The position numbers and the translations under genes were made by a program. The notes beneath the pieces are model-generated. The model was given only the letters and a program-made list of their open reading frames with translations. It ran no database searches and had not been told where the DNA came from. Positions 2-20,596 of a stretch of DNA of 32,000 nucleotides are shown piece by piece. The DNA is taken from contig MTSL01000219.1 in assembly GCA_002794465.1 (NCBI GenBank), positions 95,322 to 127,321 of the forward strand, in the 5' to 3' direction. The DNA comes from Paramicrosporidium saccamoebae KSL3. Taxonomy: Eukaryota > Fungi > Cryptomycota. Position 1 is the stretch's first letter. Every line of letters begins with the position of its first letter.

Positions 2-1084
2 CTTATGCTCTCTGTACACGACAATGCGGTGTGGCGACTCCGGGGAGAGGCGCATCCCGAGGAATGGGAGCTCGCCCGGGAAGGCATCGAGTATCTCCTA
101 ATGAATCAACTCTACTCAACAGCATTTGCACCCAAGGAGGATCGAGATCGCGACCAAATTGTGGCAAGGAAGATGTCATTGTATGGTGAATGGATGCAAG
201 CCCGGCATTTGGACATTAAGGGTCCGATCTTGGATGACGAATTGTTGTTGGATGAGGCGATTATAGAATTTAGAAAGATTAACGAATATCTGACGCCACG
301 TGACAAACTCATCTGTCTGTTGAATGGCTCTAAAATTATTCAAAGTTCCCACAATGATATCGGCTGACTTGTAGATCTGGTGGAGAGTTGCAGTCCAGAC
401 GCCAGTGCAGACGAAATCATGCCGATCCAGATTCTGGCAATTTTAAAGTCCAAAGTTTCCCACTTTCACTCCAACTTGCAGTATGTTTCGCGATACCGGG
501 ACCAGAGAAAGCTGGCCAGTGATAGTGCCTATCATTTCACCAGTCTCCTGGCCGTGTCATCGTTTATTGAACGGATGGACCAGCAATCATTGGTGATTTC
601 CGACGAAGAATTCAATGAGCGGATGGAGGAAGCAAACAGACAGAATGTAGAGTCTGCTAGTGAATTTGTAGCCGAGCCTCGTCGATCCGATCCTCTTCCC
701 ACTGACAGGCGGCAGGATCAGGGCATGTCCCAGGACCAGTTCAAGGAAGAGGCTACAAAAGTATATATTAGTGTCAAGGAAAAGGTGAAGCTGGGAGCCT
801 CAAAGTCGATTGACTATCTGGGGAAGCTGATGACTGAGGCAGAGGCCAAGATCAAAGCAGCCATCAGTTCCGGCTCGGCCAGTCCCGCTCAAGAAGAACG
901 TGAGCAGATGATGAGGAATGAAGACGAGTTCCAGCTACAACTTGCCATGGCTTTGTCACTTTCTGAACAAGAGTGTCGTGCCAACAATCTGGACAAGTCG
1001 GCAGAGAAAGGACAGCTCATTGAAATCCAGGATCCGGATCATCAGGAACGCGACAGTAAATCCTCCTCCACGGAGCCGTCCTAA
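2..1084 (+). CDS. VPS9: VPS9-domain Rab5 GEF with C-terminal UIM; 5'-partial; exons <2..344 and 375..1084
   Basis: VPS9-domain motifs TPRDKLICLLN, SADEIMP and SNLQYVSRYR. A 30-nt intron at 345..374 (GTTCCC...GCTGAC TTGTAG) joins the two ORFs in frame (KIIQ-N-LVESC). UIM-like EDEFQLQLAMALSLSE at 920..973. The frame is open to the window edge. Confidence 0.85.
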
Positions 1085-8505: not shown

Positions 8506-10453
8506 TCAACGGTCTTGGAGGTGCGTGTCTAGTACTCGGAATAGAACAAAATCAATTTGATTTTGACGGAACACGGCATGCCAATTGCGCTGGGCATCGG
8601 ACAGACGATCGTTGGTACTCTTCACCTCTACCAGTCGGTATGCACTACGGTCTGGTCGATACAATAGTAGATCAGGAAGGCCTGCGGAACTGTGACCATA
8701 ATCTTCTGCCAAAACCCGAAGGAGGGGTGATAAAGCCGGTCCCAACGCGTGGCAAATATCCAATAAGGCATCCAGGGGATATTCTTCCCACAGGACGCCC
8801 AGGGCCTGACAGCCATAAAAAGGATAATATGAATCAACAAGCAGCTGAGGAGCCGCTCCCTCGCCAATCTGCGTCAGACGCGTCTCAATGGCCGTCTTTC
8901 GCACGCGATAAAAAGCATCGGTGCTGAGGTCGAGGGGGGCAGTCTGATAGGGTGTCTGGAACACATCGGGAGTATCTCCATACAATATGTCCCAGAAACA
9001 GAGGGCAAATAACATGCGATAAACACGCGATTCGCAATGAAAACCACGCCAGCCTTGATCCATAAAATGCTCCAGGACTAAATCTTCTACCGAAACAAGA
9101 ACATGCTGTTTGGAGAGATACAATAGCTTACGACCCGTAGTGCGAGTCGTTTCAGGGTCCGCATAAAGGGTCACCGTTTCGGGTGGTTCGTCCAGATCAA
9201 AGGACGTATGAGTAAGCTTACAAAGTCTTCGTTGTAGGGCGATGCGACTACCGGTGCGCACGTGAATGTCTTCCAAGGCCTCTTGACACTTTTTCAATGC
9301 CTCAGTCTTGCCGCCAACATGAGTTGCCAAATTGAGCACAAGTCGCTCCCACCATTTGCCACGATAACCCAGACAATAGACATCCTGACCAAGCAAAATC
9401 TCCAGGATGCGGTTGGCTTCCTTATGGTTTTTGGCCTTTTCCAGGAAACCTACCAACGACGTCAGCATTCGTGTATACACCCAACCCGCAGTATATCGTC
9501 GTAGAAAGTACGAATGCACCGTCTGTCCCGCTGCGTAGCTACTCTTCCAGTTCTCCAATACAGCTGCCAGTAGATCGGGCAGCAGATCGTCTGTCTCATC
9601 GCCTGCCAACATTTCGCTGACCGTCTTTTCGTATCGGATGGCCTCGTCATATGCAATCCAATCCGAACGACTGGAGAACACGGGCCCACTCTTTACCAGA
9701 ACATAGGGCGGATATCTCTTTCTATTGAGGTCCGTCATAATGGCTGTGCTAAGATTGTTCTCTTCCTGTGCGGTCGAATCCAGAAAGAATAGTCCAAAGA
9801 TCCGTCGTAACGATTCAATGGCCATCGGTGGGATGCGCACCACCGGGCCTGCAAGACCTCGACCCAGCTCCATAATGCGTTCCGTCGCTTCATCGGCAAT
9901 GGATTTCCTCGTCGGTCCAAAATTCAGTCGCTTTTGCTTTGATCGTCGGGTGGCCAGGATCTCGTGCCGTATCCGTTCTCTGTTCAATGCCGAGCCCAAT
10001 TGTAATCTCAAGCTTTTGGCCAGACTCCTAAGTTCCTCCAATTGCAGAATATCCAGCATTTCTTCCGGTTCGGTGGGCTCCACTGCATTAATTAGAAAAA
10101 TAGTGGATCTGCTTACGTTCGACCAAATTGGCCTCGGCTAGCACAGAGACGGCAGTGGGACAATTGCCAATGTCCTTGTACTCTAATCTATCCACTCGGA
10201 ACCATCCAATCTTTCGCAAATATAGCCTAAAGAACATGCGTTGTGCATCTCCCTCTAGTCTTTGTATCCTTGCTACCAATCCAAGTTCCTCCTCGAGCAG
10301 AATATTGCCGTATGCATCCTCCACTGCTGTCAATATGGCCAGCAGGCTTTTCTGATAATATGACAATGACGGTTCATATTGTGTGAGTTCACGAGACTCG
10401 TAGAATTCATGAGACTCGATGTGGGATTCACTCTTTTCATGGGGTGTATTCAT
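8506..10453 (-). CDS. FAN1: Fanconi-associated nuclease 1 (VRR-NUC); exons 10453..10117 and 10082..8506 (637 aa)
   Basis: RLYLRKIGWFR, YRGKWWERL, GWRGFHCES, APLDL, and an intact PD-(D/E)xK core GLPDLLL...VEVKSTNDRLSDAQ. A 34-nt intron at 10116..10083 (GTAAGC...CTAAT TAATGCAG). Start set at the first in-frame ATG. Confidence 0.92.
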
Positions 10454-10500
10454 GCTTGCAACCCGCCTATATATACGCAATTATATCCATAAATATACTA

Positions 10501-10604
10501 GTAGTTATCCCGTAACCATCCCCGTAGTTATCCCCCGTGATTATTCCCGTAGTTATCCCCGTAATTATTCCCGTAGTTATCCCCCGTAATTATTCCCGTA
10601 GTTA
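10501..10604. repeat. Tandem repeat of 11-13-nt units with a 24-25-nt higher-order dimer; G-tract-rich on the minus strand
   Basis: GTAGTTATCCCC(C) alternates with GTAATTATTCCC; about 8.5 units. Confidence 0.92.
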
Positions 10605-10691
10605 CGCTCGCTACTCTCCTCATTAATGCACTCATTACTTCACTTATTACTACACTTGCTGATTGTCTACAGTTTATATGATATATGCACA

Positions 10692-10952
10692 TTACACTCC
10701 TCCAAAGCTGTTTCGTCGTTGCAGATTGGCATGGGCCCGAGAAAACAGACCAGGCAACGACTATGCAATTAAAACACGACCGTGGTACAAGGTCCATTTG
10801 GTGGGTCACCAGATTGTTGGCGGTGGCATAAATGACCAAATAGGCCGCCAGGATAATCAGTAGGGCGATTCCCGTGTTCTACGCAGTCACAGTGGTGAGA
10901 GGGGCGGTACCCAATCCATGCTTGTCGACCACTCTTCCGAATCACACCCCAT
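10692..10952 (-). CDS. Hypothetical single-TM microprotein (55-66 aa); exons 10952 or 10919..10911, 10878..10789 and 10760..10692
   Basis: Two intron-shaped segments (10910..10879, 32 nt; 10788..10761, 28 nt; both GTACC...TAG, phase 0) join an open frame containing GIALLIILAAYLVIYATA. No family recognised. Confidence 0.4.
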
Positions 10953-10985
10953 GCGATAAGTAACAACTATCCTCGTCTGTAATGC

Positions 10986-12248
10986 TCACGATTCCAGGAC
11001 ACTGACGGGTTGTATGTTGTCGGGAGGGTATTGGAAATGCGGCCCCAGATTGAGTTGTACACAGGCACCACCATAGACGGAAACTGCCGGATAGTATTTT
11101 GCATGGTATATGGATTTGAAGGCGGAGCCGTATTGTTGACCATTAACGCTGAAACTGATGCTTCCCTGCTCCAAAATGTCCTGTCGCACATGATACTGAC
11201 CAAACTTGAAGGGCGGATATTCTTCTTCAATTTCTGCTCGAAGATGTTCTGCAAATTGCGGCTGTTCGACGGATGGAATATCGAGAAGAACACCAATGAC
11301 GGCACCAGAGAGGATGGGTGCGGCATAAGGTTTGGGACGGCCGCAATGCACAGAAGCTCCGTCTGAGCTGCAGATAGCATAGCCATATTCGTCATAGCCC
11401 ACAGATGCCTGAGTGGCAGCCAGGATCTGAGCCAGTCCTACCCGTACATGGCCATCCTGTGGTGTATGAAATGTAATCTCAAAATACCATCGTCCTCCAC
11501 GATCGATTCCGTGGGTGGTTCGGGCTACACGATAGCCTCCATCACCCCCCACATTCCATTGATCAATGCGCAATTCAGGAGCAGTGTGGGTGGGGAGACG
11601 AGAGATGCTGACGGGACCGGGTGGATTGGGACGATCAAAGTCCAAATTGCTAAACACAAAGGACGCCGCTAGCTGACGCATTTGTTTTCTTAGCCTACGG
11701 GCCTGTGAGGACGCCTCATTGTCCTGTTCTGCCTCTTTGCGACGAGAACTGGCCCGCTGTAGCGGTTTGAGGGTTCCGTCTGGAAGGATTTCGTAATCGG
11801 CCTCCCGCGTCTGAACTGCCTCTACCTCGGACGGTGGCACCTTATCAATGAGCGTCCAAAAGCCGTTGAGAGTACGGCCCAGCTCTTTGCCACTCTGAAA
11901 ACGTGTACCCGAATAAGTGGATAGGGCAGCCACTACGGATGTCTGCCAATTGCCGCTTCGGTCACGGTCCCACAACAGTCCCCAATACTGTTCGATTTCG
12001 TCACAAATGCTGCGCCAATGGAAAAACTTGAGACCTTCAATGCTGTGGGCTGAGGGATGGGCCTCAATCAACTGGTACAGCAACAGGTGCACCACATCCA
12101 CCCAAGTGACATGCAGACGCGCCAAAGTCTCTCCCTCACCACACTCATTGCACGTGTATCGGAGGAATGAGTCACACGGCAAAAGGGCCAACGCACAAAA
12201 CGCACTGTCTTCTGTCACCTTTCCGCATTTGTGACACGTCAATTTCAT
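10986..12248 (-). CDS. ASH2: COMPASS (Set1) subunit Ash2/Bre2: atypical PHD plus winged helix and SPRY, 420 aa as called
   Basis: N-terminal CxxC...CxxC followed by TWVDVVHLLLYQL and NWQTSVVAALS. SPRY motifs GYRVARTTHGI, WYFEI, VGYDEYGY and YYPAVSVY. The 3' end may be extended by splicing (see findings). Confidence 0.88.
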   Translation of the reverse strand: MKLTCHKCGKVTEDSAFCALALLPCDSFLRYTCNECGEGETLARLHVTWVDVVHLLLYQLIEAHPSAHSIEGLKFFHWRSICDEIEQYWGLLWDRDRSGNWQTSVVAALSTYSGTRFQSGKELGRTLNGFWTLIDKVPPSEVEAVQTREADYEILPDGTLKPLQRASSRRKEAEQDNEASSQARRLRKQMRQLAASFVFSNLDFDRPNPPGPVSISRLPTHTAPELRIDQWNVGGDGGYRVARTTHGIDRGGRWYFEITFHTPQDGHVRVGLAQILAATQASVGYDEYGYAICSSDGASVHCGRPKPYAAPILSGAVIGVLLDIPSVEQPQFAEHLRAEIEEEYPPFKFGQYHVRQDILEQGSISFSVNGQQYGSAFKSIYHAKYYPAVSVYGGACVQLNLGPHFQYPPDNIQPVSVLES

Positions 12249-12316
12249 GCGTCTTCCCGTAGTCGCACAGTCATTGGCTCAATATCAGAGGGTATGATTG
12301 GCCGAGGGCAGAACCA

Positions 12317-14319
12317 ATGAAAAGAGAGTCGCAGTCCGATATAGGGCGAATCAGCGGATCGATTGGGGGCTATTGTGGAATGGGATTGTTGCGCTTCATA
12401 GCCATCCCAGTGAGACGACTGCTTCATGACGACACACTTGCAGGCGCGATCCTGGAAAAGGGCACGTCTGCCTCCACATTGTGGGGCGTCTTTTCGGAAC
12501 ACGCCACGGTATGTTCTGATGGGTAATTGTTGATCGATAGGGTGGCTCAGTGTGGACCATTGGAGCAATCGTAGGTGCGGCCCTGGCGTTGGTGGCAATG
12601 CTCGTGGGGTTATCCTTTGTGGTTATCCCGTTTCAGACGCTGCGCAATTGGCAGAAGCGACGCATCGGCGGTGCTGCGCAGACACGTCGATTTCAATTCT
12701 GTTGGCTCGTTCTGTTGGGTGTGGCGGTAGCAGTGACAGCTGACGCGGTATGGAGCAATGTCACAGCATTTGGATTATATGGCGGAGCGGAGCAGACGCT
12801 AAGAATGATTGATACAGTCCATAGCCACGCCGGCGTTCTAACAAAGGCCGCCTTGGCCACGGAACGGTTTGTCACTGGCATCCAAGGCTCTGTGATCAGT
12901 GCTGCCACAGGTGGAAAGGATCTGCAACCCGCCCTCAAACTCGTCGAGGAATATGCCACCGATGTTGATTCATTTGCTAATTTCCTAAAATATAACGTGT
13001 CCTTCCTCACTGAGCGGCTGAGCGACTCCCAGCTGCCGAGTGATAAACTCCAGACGATGCAGCAGATGCTCAAAGATGTGGGCGACAGTGAGGCTCTTGG
13101 AAAGCTTGCAAAACTCTCCGAGGCAATGAAAAATATGCGTGGCGAGACGCTGAATGGTCTCGGAAACCTCGCCAGTTTCTGGCCCGACCTCGAGCCCACG
13201 CGGCTGCACATTGTCGAGTTGGGTGAACGTCTGCAGAGCACCGAGATGGTTCGTTTCCTGTGGGTATTTTTCGTGTTATTCCTCTTTGTCGGAATTGTAG
13301 CCGCAGGACTGCAATTCTTCCGCATGAAGCGTTTCCGTATTGTCATGTGCTGCATGACAGCTGTTGCATTAATGCTGTCCCTAATGTATCTGGGTCATGC
13401 CTTCCATTTGGTCAGCGGCACATTGCTCGGCGCCTTTTGTGATGCATTAACTGGCGATGGCACACAGAAGCCTCTCCTGTTGCCCGTCTCAGATACATTT
13501 TCGCTCGACCTGGCCAAGGTAAATCACATGGCCAGCAGCTGCAGTGCCGGCCATGACATGATGAGTGCTCTACTGAGTGCCTATGCTACTGACGATAAGC
13601 AGCTGCAGAACATTAATCCACTTGTCACATTGGATCCACGGGCACAGGAGGTCATTATCAAGACGCCGTTGGCCACGGTTAACTTTGCCGTCAAGGACCG
13701 ACAGGTAGACTACAAGGCCGCGTTAGACAAGGCAGTTGATGGATTCGTCTCAACCACTGCCGACCAAGTTGGCAAACTCAATGCCACATCCGTCAAGAAG
13801 ATGGTGGAGGGTGCTCAATTGCTGTCCGAGTTGGACTATAGCGGACTCACGGACACTTTGCAAATGCTCAGTCTCCTCCTCGCCACTGCTGACAGTGTGT
13901 CCTCGCCTGTTGATCTGATGCTGAAAAATTTCAAGGTTACTGCCCGTAGTCATATTGACCGGATCAAAGCACTCCTTGCCGCTCTGAAGACCCAATCGGC
14001 GACCATCTATCCTGCCGCCAAGGCTCTCTCTCTCCATCTTGATAATGCACAACAGAATCCCACCGAGTTTCTTGCGGGTCTACAACGTACCTTAAAGGCA
14101 GACGTTGCCCAATTTGTGGCCGACACGTTACAGCCTGCCATGAACTGTCAGAAGACTGGTGCGGTTGTAGAGGGTGCCTTTGGTACTGTCTGCTCCGCAG
14201 CGGGTGCTCTCCAAGCACTCTTTTTGGCCTTTGGGATCCTCATCAATATGGCCATTGCGTTTTGTATTATGCTGCTTATTTGTAGAAAGTTTAGCGATAT
14301 CCATACTGAGGCTGAATAA
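12317..14319 (+). CDS. Five-TM Tweety/prominin-superfamily-like membrane protein; exons 12317..12508 and 12541..14319 (656 aa)
   Basis: A 32-nt intron at 12509..12540 (GTATGT...TTGAT CGATAG). Five hydrophobic helices in 2+2+1 arrangement with two large loops. Motifs EMVRFLW, IVMCC...GAFC and C...C...LQALFL resemble TTYH and prominin. Start codon uncertain. Confidence 0.65.
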
Positions 14320-14450
14320 ACCATCAATTTAGTATATCGTGCTGAAATGTGTAACAAGTTTATGAGAGTATATCCATTGATCATTGATCAAGGTTAAGAC
14401 TCGAGATTCTAATAGTCTTTACCACAATCCCCAATACAAGGGCCTTACTA

Positions 14451-14510
14451 CAAACCCAAACCCAGACCCAGACCCAAATCTAAACCTAAACCTAGACCTA
14501 GACTTAAACC
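14451..14510. repeat. Ten degenerate hexamers (CAAACC/CAGACC/TAAACC/TAGACC) directly after the AFG2B stop
   Basis: caaacc caaacc cagacc cagacc caaatc taaacc taaacc tagacc tagact taaacc. Confidence 0.9.
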
Positions 14511-14513
14511 TCG

Positions 14514-16551
14514 CTAGTAACACAGATCGGAGGGCTCTATCCGATCATGTCCTCGTCCAATGGCACAGAGAGCCGCTTCTTGGATCAGCTGTTTCAAATC
14601 GGCACCCGAAGATCCCACAGTATTATCGGCAATGGCTCCCAAATCGATACTTTTGTCAATGGGGGTGTGCTGGAGGATCTTTTGAAGAATGTCTAACCGA
14701 TCATTGCGTTCTGGGAGGGGAATATGCACCAGTCGGTCAAATCGGCCCGGTCTCAGTAGGGCAGCGTCAATGGCGTTCAATCGGTTAGTGGCTCCCAATA
14801 CCACTACTCCCCGCATCGTCTCAATGCCGTCCATCTCGTTTAGCAGAGTGGAGAGTACTCGTTCTTGTACCATGTCGCCGTGTCCTCTTTTCCCCACTAG
14901 GGCGTCTACTTCGTCAATAAAGATAAGCGATGGGGCCGTTTGACGGGCACTAAGGAACACTTGACGCACCAAACGCTCCGCTTCGCCCACATATGCCGAG
15001 AACACGGCGGCTCCGCTGAGAGAATAGAAGGAAAAGGAGCCGCGACTGGCCAGGATCTTGGCAATGGTCGTTTTGCTGCATCCCGGAGGACCATACAGGA
15101 GTACTCCACGGGGCTGCTGCAGGCCGAGTCTTGAAAAGGCCTCTTTATGTTGCAACGGCCATTCAATGGCTCTCTGAAGCTCCATCTTGATAGTTGCCAT
15201 CCCTCCCAAATCATCCCAATCCAGACCGCCTTCCACTGGCACTCGGTATTCTCTAATCAGAGAGGGAGTCATCCCCGCCAGTGCTTTGTTAGCATCATCT
15301 CCAGTAATCCGTACAGTCCTAGTAGACTCATCTTGACTACCAATTCCTCCACCTTTTCGCTTTACACATTCCAACACAATTGCTCTTGTCAGAGCTGCAA
15401 GATCGGCTGCCACATATCCAATCGTTCTTTTGGCAAGCTCTTCAACAAGCGCAATATCGACTTCAGGAAGCATGTTCAGCAACATGGTTTGTCTCATTTC
15501 TGTATCAGGTGGGTGGATGACAATCTCACGGTCAAATCTACCAGGCCTCCTCAGCGCTGGATCTAGGACATTTGGTCGGTTTGTTGCGCCAATAATAAGC
15601 AAATTACCTCTTCGGCCCTCTGCTCCGTCCATTAGAGTCAACAGCTGCGCGAGCAAACGGACCTGACTCTGATCAGATCCCGAATCTCTTTTGCATCCAA
15701 TAGAGTCCTAAATATTTAGCAAGATGGGGAGTTTACAATCTCATCCAAGAATAAAACACAGCACTTGTGGGCGGCCGCATCTTCAAAAACTTTTCTCAGA
15801 TTGGCTTCGCTTTGTCCCAGTAGGGGAGAGACTATTTCTGGTCCATTCATAACCACCAACGGCACGTTAAACTCTCTGCACAAACATCGTACCAAATGTG
15901 TCTTTCCTACTCCCGGCGGGCCCGACATGAGTACCCCGCGTGGGATATTCCAAACTCCCTTTAGCACTGCCACGAGCATCTCTCTCAACATGGAATATGC
16001 TCCATTATCGCTAACGTTCAACGACTCCCCCTCCTCCTTGATTTGGATTTCTATACATGTTGCTGCATCAATTGCACGCGGCTCCTCTGAATCACACTCT
16101 ACCCTTAGTGCTTCACTCAACTGACAGCCATCCCAAACTAGCCGACCAAGCAAATCCAGACGGTCCACGGTAGAGTTTAGGATAATCTTTGAAATGGCCG
16201 GTGGGGCTTTGCACCATATTCTTCCTACTGCGCAGAGGCCCTCCTGGATTTTATCACCTTTCCTCCCCTCATATGAAGGGCTATGTAGTTGAATAAATGA
16301 CTGGTGCAGACTGACAGCTGGAAACGGGTGCACCATATAGACCTACGTTCAATGAACCCTATTGCCTCGCTTACCTTGTCATTTGTAACTAATTCGATAA
16401 TGCTTCGATTATTAACAAGTTGCTTGCCTAATCTCCACCAGAGAGCCGGTGGCAAATATGCTCTTCCACAATGGGCTATCCCCGAATCATCAAGTACTTG
16501 ATATGGGTAATATTCATCCATTCCTCCATCCTGGTCACTACAACTGCGCAT
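14514..16551 (-). CDS. AFG2B: Double-AAA ATPase of the AFG2 family, SPATA5L1/AFG2B-like; exons 16551..16375, 16342..15737 and 15707..14514 (658 aa)
   Basis: D1 PRGVLMSGPPGVGKTHLVR, D2 GPPGCSKT, and VQERVLSTLLNEMDG resemble SPATA5L1 more than SPATA5. Introns 16374..16343 (32 nt, GTAAGC) and 15736..15708 (29 nt, GTAAAC) restore LFLDEI-DSI. Confidence 0.8.
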
Positions 16552-16689
16552 TTACTAATCCTCGACTGCACAGCAAACCTTTGACTTTACGCCGTAATCT
16601 TTGACACGGTATACATTAAATCTCATTACTATCATGGACCTTCAACCTCAGTGTTGAACACACATGTTTATTAACATTCACAATGAAAA

Positions 16690-17526
16690 TTATAGTGGAG
16701 TGGTTGATTGCGCCTTGTTTGCAATCAAATCATTCACTGCAATGACTGCCCTCGCCAATGCACTCACATACACCATGGCCATTTGGTCATTTGTCTTTAC
16801 AGTCAGCGCCATCTTGGACGTCCGACTGTGCACATCAGGCAACAGGTTAAACATGTCCTGTGCCCCACCCACAATCTCCTGACGAACCGGAAGTCGGCCC
16901 TCCACTACGGCCTGCAAATAGGCATCCAAGTCGCCCAGCTGTGCATCCAATTCTGCCAGACTTTTGATTTTCGTGGAAACGGCATGAGTCAACGAGCCAG
17001 AGGGTCCACGAAGGTCGCGCAACAAATGCTCCACACCTACTGCTTCCGGTTCGTCAGCCTCGAGGAATGAGGGGACATGGGCAAAGGTGGGCGGCTGGGA
17101 CGGATCCTCCTGCAGCGCATGATATGCCTGAACGGGCATTCCTCCGCTGCATTTGGCATCGATAATGCAGAGAACAGGCGACGTACAGTATTCGCGAAGA
17201 GTCGTGTGGATCTTTACATCCGAAGCCCGCAACTTTGGCCCGCTGTGATACCATCCCACCGGACGCTCCTTTGCATTAATCTTCTTGTACAACTCACTCA
17301 TGTTCTCGAGGTAATTATGGTCAAGATACCAGACAGTCGGGTCCGCTTCGTTCTCCTCAAACGGCACGGCATACGAATTGGTAATGTGGACCGTGCGTCC
17401 CGTCCAATTTCCCAGCAGAATCCCAACCACCCGTTTTCCGGGTCCGAGTGCGGCCCTCTGGTAGTGGTCCACCACAGAAAGCAGCACCAGTGGATGGACG
17501 ATAACTTGTTCCGGTGCGACTGCCAT
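16690..17526 (-). CDS. RPN8: 26S proteasome lid subunit Rpn8/PSMD7, 278 aa
   Basis: VIVHPLVLLSVVDHY, RVVGILLG, NSYAVPFEE, VGWYHSGPKL. The charged C-terminal tail is absent. Confidence 0.95.
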   Translation of the reverse strand: MAVAPEQVIVHPLVLLSVVDHYQRAALGPGKRVVGILLGNWTGRTVHITNSYAVPFEENEADPTVWYLDHNYLENMSELYKKINAKERPVGWYHSGPKLRASDVKIHTTLREYCTSPVLCIIDAKCSGGMPVQAYHALQEDPSQPPTFAHVPSFLEADEPEAVGVEHLLRDLRGPSGSLTHAVSTKIKSLAELDAQLGDLDAYLQAVVEGRLPVRQEIVGGAQDMFNLLPDVHSRTSKMALTVKTNDQMAMVYVSALARAVIAVNDLIANKAQSTTPL

Positions 17527-17564
17527 CCGATATGTTTAATACAATTATTCTTTAACCTGATTTA

Positions 17565-18536
17565 TTACGTCTTGAGGGTTTTTTGGTGATCCCGAACAAG
17601 TCGCTTGTAGAATGACTCCAAAACTAACGCCAAAAACACCACTCCCACGCAGAGCCACTGGGACAGTCGCATCCGATGCTGGAACCAGAGCAGACTGAGT
17701 AGGATGGTGAAGAGCTTTCTGGTAACAGTGATGGTCACCAGAGAAAGGGAGCCGAAATGTTCGAGAGTGTAGAAGACGAATACCTGGCCAAGGGCGCCGC
17801 AGAGACCAAAGAGGGCCACATCTCCCCTGACGGTGGGATAGTTGCGGGCAAAGGCAAGGGCCGCTGAGAATTCGTGATTCCACGGATTCAGAAGGAGATA
17901 CAGAAAGAGAAAGATGGACGAGAACAGATGCATGAAGAACATCATCTGCGGACCATACAACCGATGGTCAATAAACATCTTGTCCTGCCAGCTATTTGTT
18001 GCTCCGTCCACCATTAAATTAATCAGCAGCAGGAGTAGTCCGTATAGAGAATTGGCCCCGCCTCGTCCTCCCTCCTTCTCAAAGAGCATGAAGCCAGACA
18101 CACCGGCCGTAATCATGGCTACACTGACATATTTGTACCACTCAAATTTGCGTCGATATACGACAAAGTTCATCAGCATGACGGGGATTAGCTTGCACGA
18201 CTTTCCCAATATCATAGTTGGATAATTGATGTGACGTAGGGCCTCATATCCAAAGGGAGACCCAAGACATCCCGTCAAGGCTACGCGTGCATACTGTTTC
18301 AAGACGGACGGAGAACACGGTCCGAGGGTGCGACGCTGGAGACGGAGAACTGAGTAGGCGACAAAGACGCAGGCAATAGACTGGATGAGGTTGAGAACGA
18401 GGAAGAAACGGAACCGGCCGTGGCTGCCGTCAATGACTGAGACGTAATCAAGAGTGCTGATCCTCTCCTGCAACACTCCCCAAGTCAGGAAGAACAAATA
18501 GATGCCAGCTGCACAGAACAGTAGCTGTCCCACCAT
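17565..18536 (-). CDS. HUT1: UDP-galactose transporter family Hut1/SLC35B1, 323 aa
   Basis: GIYLFFLTWGVLQERI, YEALRHINYPTMILGKSCKLIPVM, DGATNSWQD, GQVFVFYTLEHFGSL, TRKLFT. Start placed at ATG 18536; the ORF-track extension is not family-like. Confidence 0.92.
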   Translation of the reverse strand: MVGQLLFCAAGIYLFFLTWGVLQERISTLDYVSVIDGSHGRFRFFLVLNLIQSIACVFVAYSVLRLQRRTLGPCSPSVLKQYARVALTGCLGSPFGYEALRHINYPTMILGKSCKLIPVMLMNFVVYRRKFEWYKYVSVAMITAGVSGFMLFEKEGGRGGANSLYGLLLLLINLMVDGATNSWQDKMFIDHRLYGPQMMFFMHLFSSIFLFLYLLLNPWNHEFSAALAFARNYPTVRGDVALFGLCGALGQVFVFYTLEHFGSLSLVTITVTRKLFTILLSLLWFQHRMRLSQWLCVGVVFLALVLESFYKRLVRDHQKTLKT

Positions 18537-18640
18537 GGGTGACGTGCGACAGGGGAGGGCGCATGAAGAACTACCGAGTGTTATGTGGATGACTGTGAAA
18601 GAGTGTAATAATGATCCACACATGAAATGCAGTATCCGCC

Positions 18641-18716
18641 TTATCCACTTTATTCACCTTGTTCACATTATCCACATTATCCCACACATTATCCACATTA
18701 TCCCACACATTACACA
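18641..18716. repeat. 9/12-bp tandem repeat whose unit matches TTATCCACA
   Basis: ttatccact ttattcacc ttgttcaca ttatccaca ttatcccacaca ttatccaca ttatcccacaca ttacaca. Confidence 0.9.
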
Positions 18717-18772
18717 AGATTAGTACGCATTTATAAATGATGTACAGTACACGCTTATAGTTATGGTCTATG

Positions 18773-20596
18773 TTACATTGTCCCTTCCGTTGTGATCCTA
18801 TGCGAAAAAGCCTGGTGGACTGAATGACTGTGCAGCTTTTCAGTGTCCAGGTCAATAGCAAAACACACAAAGCTCGCATCCATCGTATCACTAAAGATTC
18901 CTGTGAAGAATCGCAGCACATACCAAGTCAGCAGGGAGAAGAGCATGGCAGCATTGAATCCGTATTGGGACTGCAGTCCATGTGCAACGAAAATGTAACT
19001 GAACAGTCCAGTGATCGCCGCCACTGCCGTAGTGGAAATGGTAAACAATAGCACCGCCAGGGCGTCCGTTGTAAAGGACAACAACATGTTCCGTCGGAAT
19101 ACCTTGAACAGTGTCCTGCCAGCAGACCAGAATCCTTCGCCGGTCAAGGCCACCGTGTACAGTGCCAGATCTGACAAATGCTCCACAAGGCGTTCGACAA
19201 ATCCAAAGAACAGGGTGACACTTCTCAGAACAGTGGAGACTACGCCGCTATCAAATCTGGAGGCGACATAGTGGTAGAATTGGAAGAATAATCTCGCCAT
19301 ACGCACCATGCTAAGGATAAGCGAGGCAATACAAATCTGTCCAAAGAATGTCGTCATGGCTGCATGGAGAGACGACCACACTGAACTAGTTTGTTCCAAC
19401 TCGTCGGGATCGGCGCGGAAAAAGTACCATCGGCCAACTACTCCGCCAATCAAACACTTTTGCACTCCTGAAAAGATGAGCGATGTCCAGACCAGCATGA
19501 AAACGAGGTAGGCCTGCAGGTAGTATGAGAATCTGGAGAGGTGCCAGACGTGATGAGAGGGGTCCACATAGCCCAGCATCAGTGTGTGCACGTAGAACAG
19601 CAGCCAAACGGCAATGAAACACAAGTATGAGACAAATAGTACAAAAGAAGCCACATAAATGCCCGGATTGGAACTCAGCACTTCAGAAGTCATTTTGATA
19701 ATTTCAACTGTATGGCGGACATTTTTGCGATTTGCAACTATAAACATTCCAGAAAGTGCAGCAGCACTCAGTCCGGCCACCGCCGCCAAAAGCAGCCAGA
19801 AACCACCACCCACATCAGCGTGCAGAAATTCAAGTAGGGCCCACCCGCCAGCAGCCAAGGCAGAGAGGGGCGCAAAATACAACATCATTGTGACAATTTC
19901 GGTCGTAAACCAGCGCAATAACAGCGCCCACAACACTGAAACGACACTCCCCACACCGATGGCCGAGACCAAGATCCAACTGGAATCTACAATGGCCCTA
20001 AACATGCTGCTCCCTCGGATAATGTGATCCCTCAATTCGGTCGGATAAACAAAACATAGAAGCAGTCCCGTCGCCATCATTATTGCAAACATTATCCAAA
20101 ACACCATTGCCGCCACTCCGTCCTTCCGACTTACCGGCCCATTCAACGCCGGAAAGAGAGCTGCCTTTCTGCTCGTTGGTAATAGCTCCTCTAACAACGG
20201 CTCCCGAAGTAGCCGTCGTCCAGTGAATTCTTTGCGACGGCCTCGCATGTACGGGTCAATGTCTACCTCGGAGAGCCATTTCTTGGGGAGGGCGGACTGG
20301 GCACGCAGGTGGCCCATGTAGCTCGAATGCGCTGACGTAGTCAACGAGTCGTCATCAAGAAATGTCGTTTCGGTTTCTGAAAGCGGGAGGGATGGCGTGT
20401 TGGCGTTGAATGAGAGATAGCCATGTACGGCGGGGAGTATTGAAGGTCCGGCAGAGTCGTCTTGCCACGGCGAGGGTTCCTCTGGTATTCCTGCGATAGG
20501 CTCAATCAAGTGGGAATGCTCAGTGGCGTCATAGTAGACTGAGTTTTGCGCAGATGGGTTTGTTTCTCCCTCTCTCCGCTTCTCCCCTCCTGCCAT
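18773..20596 (-). CDS. Choline transporter-like (CTL/SLC44) multi-pass membrane protein, 607 aa
   Basis: About 10 hydrophobic helices. GGVVGRWYF, FGQICIASLI, TGEGFWSAGR and DTMDASFVCFAID are typical of the plasma-membrane choline transporter family. Confidence 0.85.
   Translation of the reverse strand: MAGGEKRREGETNPSAQNSVYYDATEHSHLIEPIAGIPEEPSPWQDDSAGPSILPAVHGYLSFNANTPSLPLSETETTFLDDDSLTTSAHSSYMGHLRAQSALPKKWLSEVDIDPYMRGRRKEFTGRRLLREPLLEELLPTSRKAALFPALNGPVSRKDGVAAMVFWIMFAIMMATGLLLCFVYPTELRDHIIRGSSMFRAIVDSSWILVSAIGVGSVVSVLWALLLRWFTTEIVTMMLYFAPLSALAAGGWALLEFLHADVGGGFWLLLAAVAGLSAAALSGMFIVANRKNVRHTVEIIKMTSEVLSSNPGIYVASFVLFVSYLCFIAVWLLFYVHTLMLGYVDPSHHVWHLSRFSYYLQAYLVFMLVWTSLIFSGVQKCLIGGVVGRWYFFRADPDELEQTSSVWSSLHAAMTTFFGQICIASLILSMVRMARLFFQFYHYVASRFDSGVVSTVLRSVTLFFGFVERLVEHLSDLALYTVALTGEGFWSAGRTLFKVFRRNMLLSFTTDALAVLLFTISTTAVAAITGLFSYIFVAHGLQSQYGFNAAMLFSLLTWYVLRFFTGIFSDTMDASFVCFAIDLDTEKLHSHSVHQAFSHRITTEGTM

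Follow-up and report, generated by a model that had tools for sequence, protein, structure and literature searches.

The gene examined here, PSACC_03711, lies on the forward strand at positions 12317-14319 of a 32,000 nucleotide (nt) stretch of the Paramicrosporidium saccamoebae KSL3 genome (GCA_002794465.1, contig MTSL01000219.1, positions 95,322-127,321, forward strand), which is referred to as the window and to which all positions refer. It is a genuine two-exon gene whose product carries the public label 'hypothetical protein PSACC_03711, partial', and the protein encoded in the window is 99% identical to that entry of P. saccamoebae. An initial annotation, made from the DNA alone, had described a Tweety/prominin-like protein with five transmembrane (TM) helices in a fungal-lineage genome. 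P. saccamoebae, a parasite of amoebae, is confirmed as fungal-lineage (Rozellomycota), and the protein is predicted to fold like the Tweety homologues TTYH1-3, of which it is a probable remote homologue. The label 'folds like TTYH' is preferred to family membership because both Pfam membership tests, Tweety and Prominin, failed.

The exons were defined from open reading frames (ORFs) and splice analysis. The GTATGT donor at 12509 gives the sole model with a strong donor that preserves the reading frame. The exon join is confirmed by a relative, P0002 (49% identical), which is encoded by an intronless gene on contig L001 and reads across the junction ('IFSEHAV-AGSIW' in P0002 and 'VFSEHAT-GGSVW' in the window protein). 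In the NCBI model the intron begins instead at a weak donor (GTCTTT) at 12488, so that the seven residues 'VFSEHAT', kept in relatives, are missing; the donor at 12509 fits better. The public model is in addition N-terminally partial. Translation from the ATG at 12317, which is used for residue numbering, gives a product of 656 amino acids. All relatives with a complete N-terminus share an 'MG[LVA]LR[FL]' start at residue 22, the tblastn matches to them all start at this residue, and the family alignment has no conservation in the 21 codons upstream. As conservation begins at residue 22, Met22 (nt 12380) is probably the translation start, giving 635 amino acids. The neighbouring double-AAA ATPase gene (ORFs 14514-15656 and 15716-16336, minus strand) has a 29-nt intron (GTAAAC...TTTAG, 15708-15736) that interrupts its Walker B motif between FLDEI and DSIG, and introns of ~30 nt therefore appear to be the norm in the P. 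saccamoebae genome. The Paramicrosporidium genome paper gave no usable information on introns or lipid metabolism.

A Kyte-Doolittle scan with a 19-residue frame identified five hydrophobic segments in a 2+2+1 pattern, and the secondary structure predicted with AlphaFold2 is concordant. The TM1-TM2 loop consists of 21 residues and is basic (K103, R104, R105, R113, R114), the TM3-TM4 loop has 7 amino acids (RMKRFR) and the tail is short, in agreement with the layout first described. The size given at that time for the first large loop was also close (~160 compared with ~164 amino acids), but the second loop is slightly longer than the ~240 amino acids stated (~266). Large loop 1 is all helical in the AlphaFold2 model (helices 109-176, 193-226, 231-264 and 282-326) and starts as the continuation of TM2; it contains the sequons N137 and N216 and a conserved turn, RFxTG...GKDLRP. 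Large loop 2 has a small beta-sheet insert (about residues 377-449) followed by a helical bundle, and contains the sequon N478. The three N-x-S/T sequons all fall within the large loops, and basic residues mark the short loops and the tail. Based on the positive-inside rule, the N-terminus and both large loops would be outside or lumenal and the short basic loops and the tail cytoplasmic. No hydrophobic segment that could be a cleavable signal peptide was found ahead of TM1 by hydropathy, the only criterion used; the conserved N-terminus is MGLLRFIAIPVRRLLHDD. A Pfam match to MscL on TM5 (E = 0.024) was dismissed as hydrophobic noise.

When 1.84 billion representative proteins were searched exhaustively and without filters using a HMMER profile, a family of seven members including PSACC_03711 emerged, the others all being from metagenome or SRA assemblies. 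The same search had no match with E of 0.001 or better in Rozella, in canonical Microsporidia or in any other named genome. A second search, word-indexed and run with an 8-sequence profile, gave no additional relatives, and a scan of metagenome contigs with a 6-sequence alignment gave 339 pattern matches and no confirmed relative. The family is known from Paramicrosporidium plus a small number of uncultured relatives. The gene order FAN1 - SPRY - X - AAA ATPase - JAB/MPN (window 8506-20596), where X is the TTYH-like gene, is kept on contigs L002, L004 and L005, which belong to uncultured relatives for which SRA or ENA assemblies are the only source. On L004 the synteny continues to a UAA (sugar) transporter and a choline-transporter-like gene, and the SPRY gene adjoins X on L001 and L003 as well. 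All five contigs long enough to show neighbours have X in the same neighbourhood, and the copies of X are orthologues. Of the genes in the block, X evolves fastest, with 30-33% identity between the window protein and its relatives on L002, L004 and L005 compared with 48-71% for the neighbours. Such rapid evolution within an otherwise well-conserved neighbourhood is consistent with an exposed surface protein.

Conservation within the family is highest in the TM3/RMKRFR/TM4 hairpin, including its loop (QF[YF]R[ML][KR][RK]FR). Other hotspots are the outer end of TM2 (ADAxWSN), the outer end of TM4 (HLVxGTLxGAFCD) and the start of TM5, and a further conserved membrane-proximal motif is CSAGxAxQxLF. 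Cys 364, 398, 600 and 615 are kept in all full-length relatives, and E299 of the E-x-x-R-F motif, at the outer border of TM3, is conserved across the family.

The structure of the protein was predicted with AlphaFold2 from an 8-sequence alignment without templates. The model has a predicted local distance difference test score (pLDDT) of 80.4 and a predicted template modelling score (pTM) of 0.78; an earlier run on two sequences (pLDDT 47) was discarded. TTYH structures were released in 2021. Three helices of the model are unbroken, namely 109-176, which carries TM2 on into the ectodomain, 282-326 and 601-648. This agrees with the TTYH structures, where TM2 passes directly into E1 and TM3 and TM5 are likewise prolonged (PMC8361169). 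When the model was compared with 350,542 PDB chains using Foldseek, ranks 1-9 were all TTYH1, TTYH2 or TTYH3 (E = 6.3e-6 to 2.1e-3, probability 0.99-1.0). Rank 14 was also a TTYH, the E-values of all ten TTYH matches being 6.3e-6 to 8.9e-3, and nearly the whole of the targets was aligned. The non-TTYH matches in the PDB had probabilities of at most 0.38. As a background control, the top long helical viral protein in BFVD had E = 5.8e-3. The PDB set searched contained no solved prominin structure.

The order and spacing of landmark residues also resemble those of TTYH. Exactly 65 residues separate the E-x-x-R-[F/W/L] motif from the first Cys downstream of TM4 in the window protein, and the same count applies to all six relatives of full length and to TTYH1 and TTYH2. 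TTYH3 has the same spacing, but Asp opens its motif (DWYRW), and in PROM1 the distance is 88. The two Cys ahead of TM5 are exactly 15 residues apart in the whole family and in TTYH1-3, and 16 in PROM1. An extended hhalign alignment is collinear across the five TM helices and pairs C364, C398, C600 and C615 with the four ectodomain Cys of TTYH1. In TTYH these form two disulfides that pin a membrane-proximal flap over the lipid cavity (PMC8361169), and the pairs 364/398 and 600/615 are putative disulfides at the same positions. Position +11, numbered from the later of the two Cys ahead of TM5, is W in PROM1 and L, V or A in the family; one relative has W at +10. The motifs quoted in the initial annotation are all present in the protein, and those given for comparison (EYYRWL, MLCC, SLLLS, SDFC) are all in the PDB sequence of TTYH2. 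Residue-level similarity to TTYH in the TM3-TM4 region is nevertheless weak (z ~2), and as 72-182 of 2000 shuffles reach its score, the resemblance is one of landmarks and spacing and not of significant identity.

Several results weigh against a relationship with TTYH. The sequences of TTYH1, TTYH2 and TTYH3 were taken from the PDB and 120 mammalian PROM1 sequences (P0012-P0131) were collected. Neither the window protein nor any of the seven relatives matched Pfam Tweety (PF04906) at E up to 10. The window protein did not match Pfam Prominin (PF05478), which is touched by one relative alone, P0006; its score of 13.4 bits (E = 0.021) falls short of the 34.3-bit cut-off, and the match is between P0006 residues 425-514 and the collinear profile positions 613-704 of 799. 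No protein of the family thus matched either profile above threshold. With a HMMER profile of the family, real TTYH and PROM1 sequences scored no higher than block-shuffled decoys. In hhalign, the family and four TTYH sequences gave a probability of 8.4% (P = 0.004) in a collinear TM3-TM4 region, and one of 80 block-shuffled controls reached the real score. The Foldseek matches to TTYH have template modelling (TM) scores of 0.15-0.37 and root-mean-square deviations above 20 Å, a poor global superposition, and 3Di scores can be inflated by all-helical proteins. Given the low TM-scores, the match lies in local structure and helix order and not in rigid superposition. Finally, TM3 of the window protein (FLWVFFVLFLFVGIVAAGLQFF) has no Asp or Glu where TTYH1-3 have an acidic residue (E or D) in the middle of the helix. 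The resemblance to Tweety first described is retained for the predicted fold, the spacings and the four aligned Cys; it does not pass any Pfam threshold and is marginal or absent in HMMER and hhalign.

Other comparisons gave no relationship. The family and 98 mammalian PROM1 sequences aligned in hhalign with a probability of 1.2% (P = 0.045) and at non-collinear positions; TTYH and PROM1 reached 75% in the same set-up. Searches of PDB sequences with phmmer (protein) and hmmsearch (family profile) found only coiled-coil noise (apolipoprotein, spike heptad repeats, designed bundles), and the global mode of hhalign returned a meaningless alignment of 4 columns. Many of the mammalian PROM1 entries have precomputed Pfam matches to both PF05478 and PF04906, an independent sign that the Prominin and Tweety families overlap at the profile level.

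The explanation favoured overall, and considered fairly likely, is that PSACC_03711 encodes a pentaspan membrane glycoprotein on the TTYH scaffold, a highly diverged, fast-evolving and lineage-restricted branch of the TTYH/prominin superfamily, with a lipid-handling role proposed by analogy. The main rival, considered unlikely, is a five-pass surface protein peculiar to this lineage, with a helical ectodomain and no relationship to TTYH or prominin; the Foldseek match would then be due to convergence or all-helical low complexity, and the matching spacings would be forced by two TM helices and a tight turn. The absence of significant sequence or profile similarity to TTYH or prominin, the 8% hhalign probability with one of 80 shuffles equal, the TM-scores of 0.15-0.37 and the restriction of the family to one small clade are all in keeping with an unrelated protein. 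Among the 350,542 PDB chains, however, only TTYH reached a probability near 1, with an E-value ~1000-fold better than the helical background. The four conserved Cys correspond one-to-one with those of TTYH in a fully collinear alignment, the spacings 65 + 15 are the same in both families and differ from those of PROM1 (88 + 16), and the helix that runs from TM2 into the ectodomain is common to both.

The prominin half of the first description is weaker. A true prominin, orthologous to the 'fungal prominins' of Bell et al. 2024 and acting as a cholesterol-binding shaper of membrane protrusions, would agree with a large loop 2 of prominin size (~266 amino acids), with the weak PF05478 match of P0006 (E = 0.021) and with the prominin-like fungal sequences on record (PMC11405016), but is very improbable. 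The P0006 match is far below the cut-off, and the only hhalign alignment to the 98 PROM1 sequences is non-collinear, whereas TTYH and PROM1 find each other in the same test. The curation rule for prominins requires two extracellular loops of >300 amino acids and small intracellular loops (Bell et al. 2024, PMC11405016), and the window protein, with loops of ~164 and ~266 amino acids, fails it. No signal peptide is seen by hydropathy, the TM3-TM4 loop has 7 amino acids, the motif-to-Cys distance is 65 and not 88, and the nearly invariant Trp of prominin TM5 (human Trp-795) has no equivalent, its position being L, V or A. The likeness of exon 1 to the prominin N-terminus, proposed at the outset, fails, as do the other prominin-specific parts (loop sizes and the TM5 Trp), while the missing signal peptide was correctly read as TTYH-like; the very short TM3-TM4 loop is TTYH-like as well. 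The family is closer to TTYH than to prominin in lacking a signal peptide and the TM5 Trp, and in its 7-residue TM3-TM4 loop and its Cys spacings. That the protein is an anion channel, the role first ascribed to TTYH proteins, is scarcely credible. The older literature presents TTYH as Ca2+- or volume-gated chloride channels (PMC8273234), but the TTYH cryo-electron microscopy structures are poreless and functional re-tests found no conduction (PMC8361169), and the window protein is without the buried acidic residue of TTYH TM3. The model, whose coordinates were not inspected for this, gives no indication of a pore.

If PSACC_03711 is built on the TTYH scaffold, TM2 would run unbroken into a long ectodomain helix, TM3 and TM5 would also leave the membrane, the two large loops would pack as a helical bundle and the Cys pairs 364/398 and 600/615 would pin a membrane-proximal flap as in TTYH. 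The TTYH proteins are not channels; they contain a cavity, filled with lipid, that leads from the outer leaflet into the proximal ectodomain (PMC8361169). TTYH2 speeds lipid transfer between lipoprotein (APOE) particles and membranes (Sukalskaia et al. 2025, PMC12328215), and TTYH1 and PROM1 drive the formation of extracellular vesicles via membrane bending, which in PROM1 is linked to cholesterol binding (PMC11405016). By analogy with TTYH2, TTYH1 and PROM1, the window protein would most likely have a lipid or membrane function, and its job would be lipid handling at the outer leaflet of the parasite surface or an endomembrane, not ion conduction. Conservation near ADAxWSN, HLVxGTLxGAFCD and CSAGxAxQxLF hints at a lipid cavity. 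The membrane-shaping factor for host invasion put forward in the initial annotation is a speculative reading; a candidate role at the parasite-host interface fits the fast evolution of the gene. A more specific proposal, that the protein is a rozellid-specific, fast-evolving TTYH lipid-transfer offshoot on the parasite surface, where it takes lipids from host membranes or carriers, or buds membrane, inside the amoeba nucleus, is improbable; it would make the protein a factor with which the parasite scavenges lipids or acts at the interface, its enlarged ectodomain facing the host.

The coordinates of the gene and its features are listed in Table 1. The 5' and 3' flanks are short. The divergent SPRY gene starts at 12248 (minus strand) and shares with X a 5' spacer of just 68-131 bp (12249-12379); the counterpart of this spacer on L002 is 29 bp, and the genomes are extremely compact. 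A degenerate hexanucleotide tandem repeat (AAACCT/AAACCC-like, ~10 copies, 83% matches) at 14452-14511 is in the short 3' spacer between the convergent TTYH-like and AAA genes.

Table 1 Features of PSACC_03711 in the window. Residues are numbered from the ATG at 12317; AF2, AlphaFold2.
Feature	Residues	Position (nt)	Strand	Description and evidence
Exon 1	1-64	12317..12508	+	N-terminal segment ahead of TM1; ORF and splice analysis
Intron (spliceosomal, 32 nt, phase 0)		12509..12540	+	GTATGT...ATAG; frame kept; intronless P0002/L001
Exon 2	65-656 and stop	12541..14319	+	Five TM helices and both large loops; ORF, PSACC_03711 match
TM1	67-93			Kyte-Doolittle
TM2	115-136			Kyte-Doolittle
TM3	301-323			Kyte-Doolittle
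TM4	331-352			Kyte-Doolittle
TM5	619-645			Kyte-Doolittle
TM1, basic loop (94-114) and TM2 ending in ADAxWSN		12547..12756	+	Hydropathy, family alignment, AF2 helices 64-92 and 109-176
Large loop 1	137-300	12757..13248	+	AF2 model, sequons, conservation
TM3/RMKRFR/TM4 hairpin, E299-x-x-R-F in front	301-352	13249..13404	+	Hydropathy, conservation, hhalign onto TTYH hairpin
Large loop 2	353-618	13405..14202	+	Conservation, hhalign, AF2 secondary structure
TM5 (619-645), 11-residue basic tail (CRKFSD...) and stop		14203..14319	+	Hydropathy, conservation, AF2
Cys364	364	13438-13440	+	Large loop 2
Cys398	398	13540-13542	+	Large loop 2
Cys600	600	14146-14148	+	Large loop 2
Cys615	615	14191-14193	+	Large loop 2

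A predicted fold and a testable class of function can thus be given to a hypothetical protein from a family that sequence databases do not recognise. The TTYH/prominin superfamily, whose biochemical role has just been defined in animals, would be extended to a reduced parasite that lives inside cells and stands at the base of the microsporidian lineage. If the lipid role is confirmed, the protein would provide a minimal, tail-less natural variant with which the function of the TTYH scaffold could be dissected, and would be a candidate explanation for the way in which parasites of this kind acquire or reshape membrane. Outside animals, homologues of TTYH and prominin are already on record, with sporadic reports in fungi and also in protists (Bell et al. 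2024, PMC11405016; Nalamalapu et al. 2021, PMC8273234), and the phylogenetic surprise is therefore smaller than first implied. What is new is the structure-based annotation of a dark Paramicrosporidium family. In a literature search, no paper mentioned this family or linked Paramicrosporidium to Tweety.

The closest known system is TTYH1-3 (PF04906; PDB 7P5J, 7P54/7P5M, 7P5C, 7RTT-7RTW, 9G71). Like these, the window protein has five TM helices arranged 2+2+1, no signal peptide by hydropathy and a very short TM3-TM4 loop. Both have a Glu at the outer end of TM3 in E-x-x-R-[F/W] (Asp in TTYH3), the spacings 65 and 15, and four ectodomain Cys in the same order. As in TTYH, the AlphaFold2 model shows TM2 running on as a long ectodomain helix, TM3 and TM5 reaching past the membrane and the ectodomain forming a helical bundle. 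By contrast, the ectodomain of the window protein is ~150 amino acids larger, with a beta-sheet insert and extra helices in place of the short E3-E4 flap; ~115 surplus residues, including the small beta-sheet, follow the second Cys and precede the last helical hairpin. The spacing of the first Cys pair is 34 and not 26-28, the acidic residue in the middle of TM3 is missing, and a C-tail of 11 residues replaces the long acidic tail of vertebrate TTYH.

Prominin (PROM1/CD133; PF05478), itself regarded as a remote homologue of TTYH (PMC11405016), is also pentaspan (2+2+1) and has two large loops with sequons, which are glycosylated in prominin, the second loop being of similar size. It shares the Cys pair ahead of TM5 (spacing 16 compared with 15 in the family), and in both the outer end of TM2 carries an aromatic-small-Asn motif (FVAN compared with VWSN). 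In the window protein, however, loop 1 is far shorter (164 amino acids) and the TM3-TM4 loop has 7 amino acids compared with ~25, and its family has neither a signal peptide by hydropathy, nor the conserved TM5 Trp, nor profile-profile similarity to mammalian PROM1. Many PROM1 sequences reach both Pfam profiles, whereas the Paramicrosporidium family reaches neither. The published fungal and protist homologues were found by BLAST, InterPro or OrthoDB and are therefore recognisable by sequence, unlike the Paramicrosporidium family. Since members of the superfamily occur outside animals, the scaffold that the window protein is predicted to share is ancient in eukaryotes.

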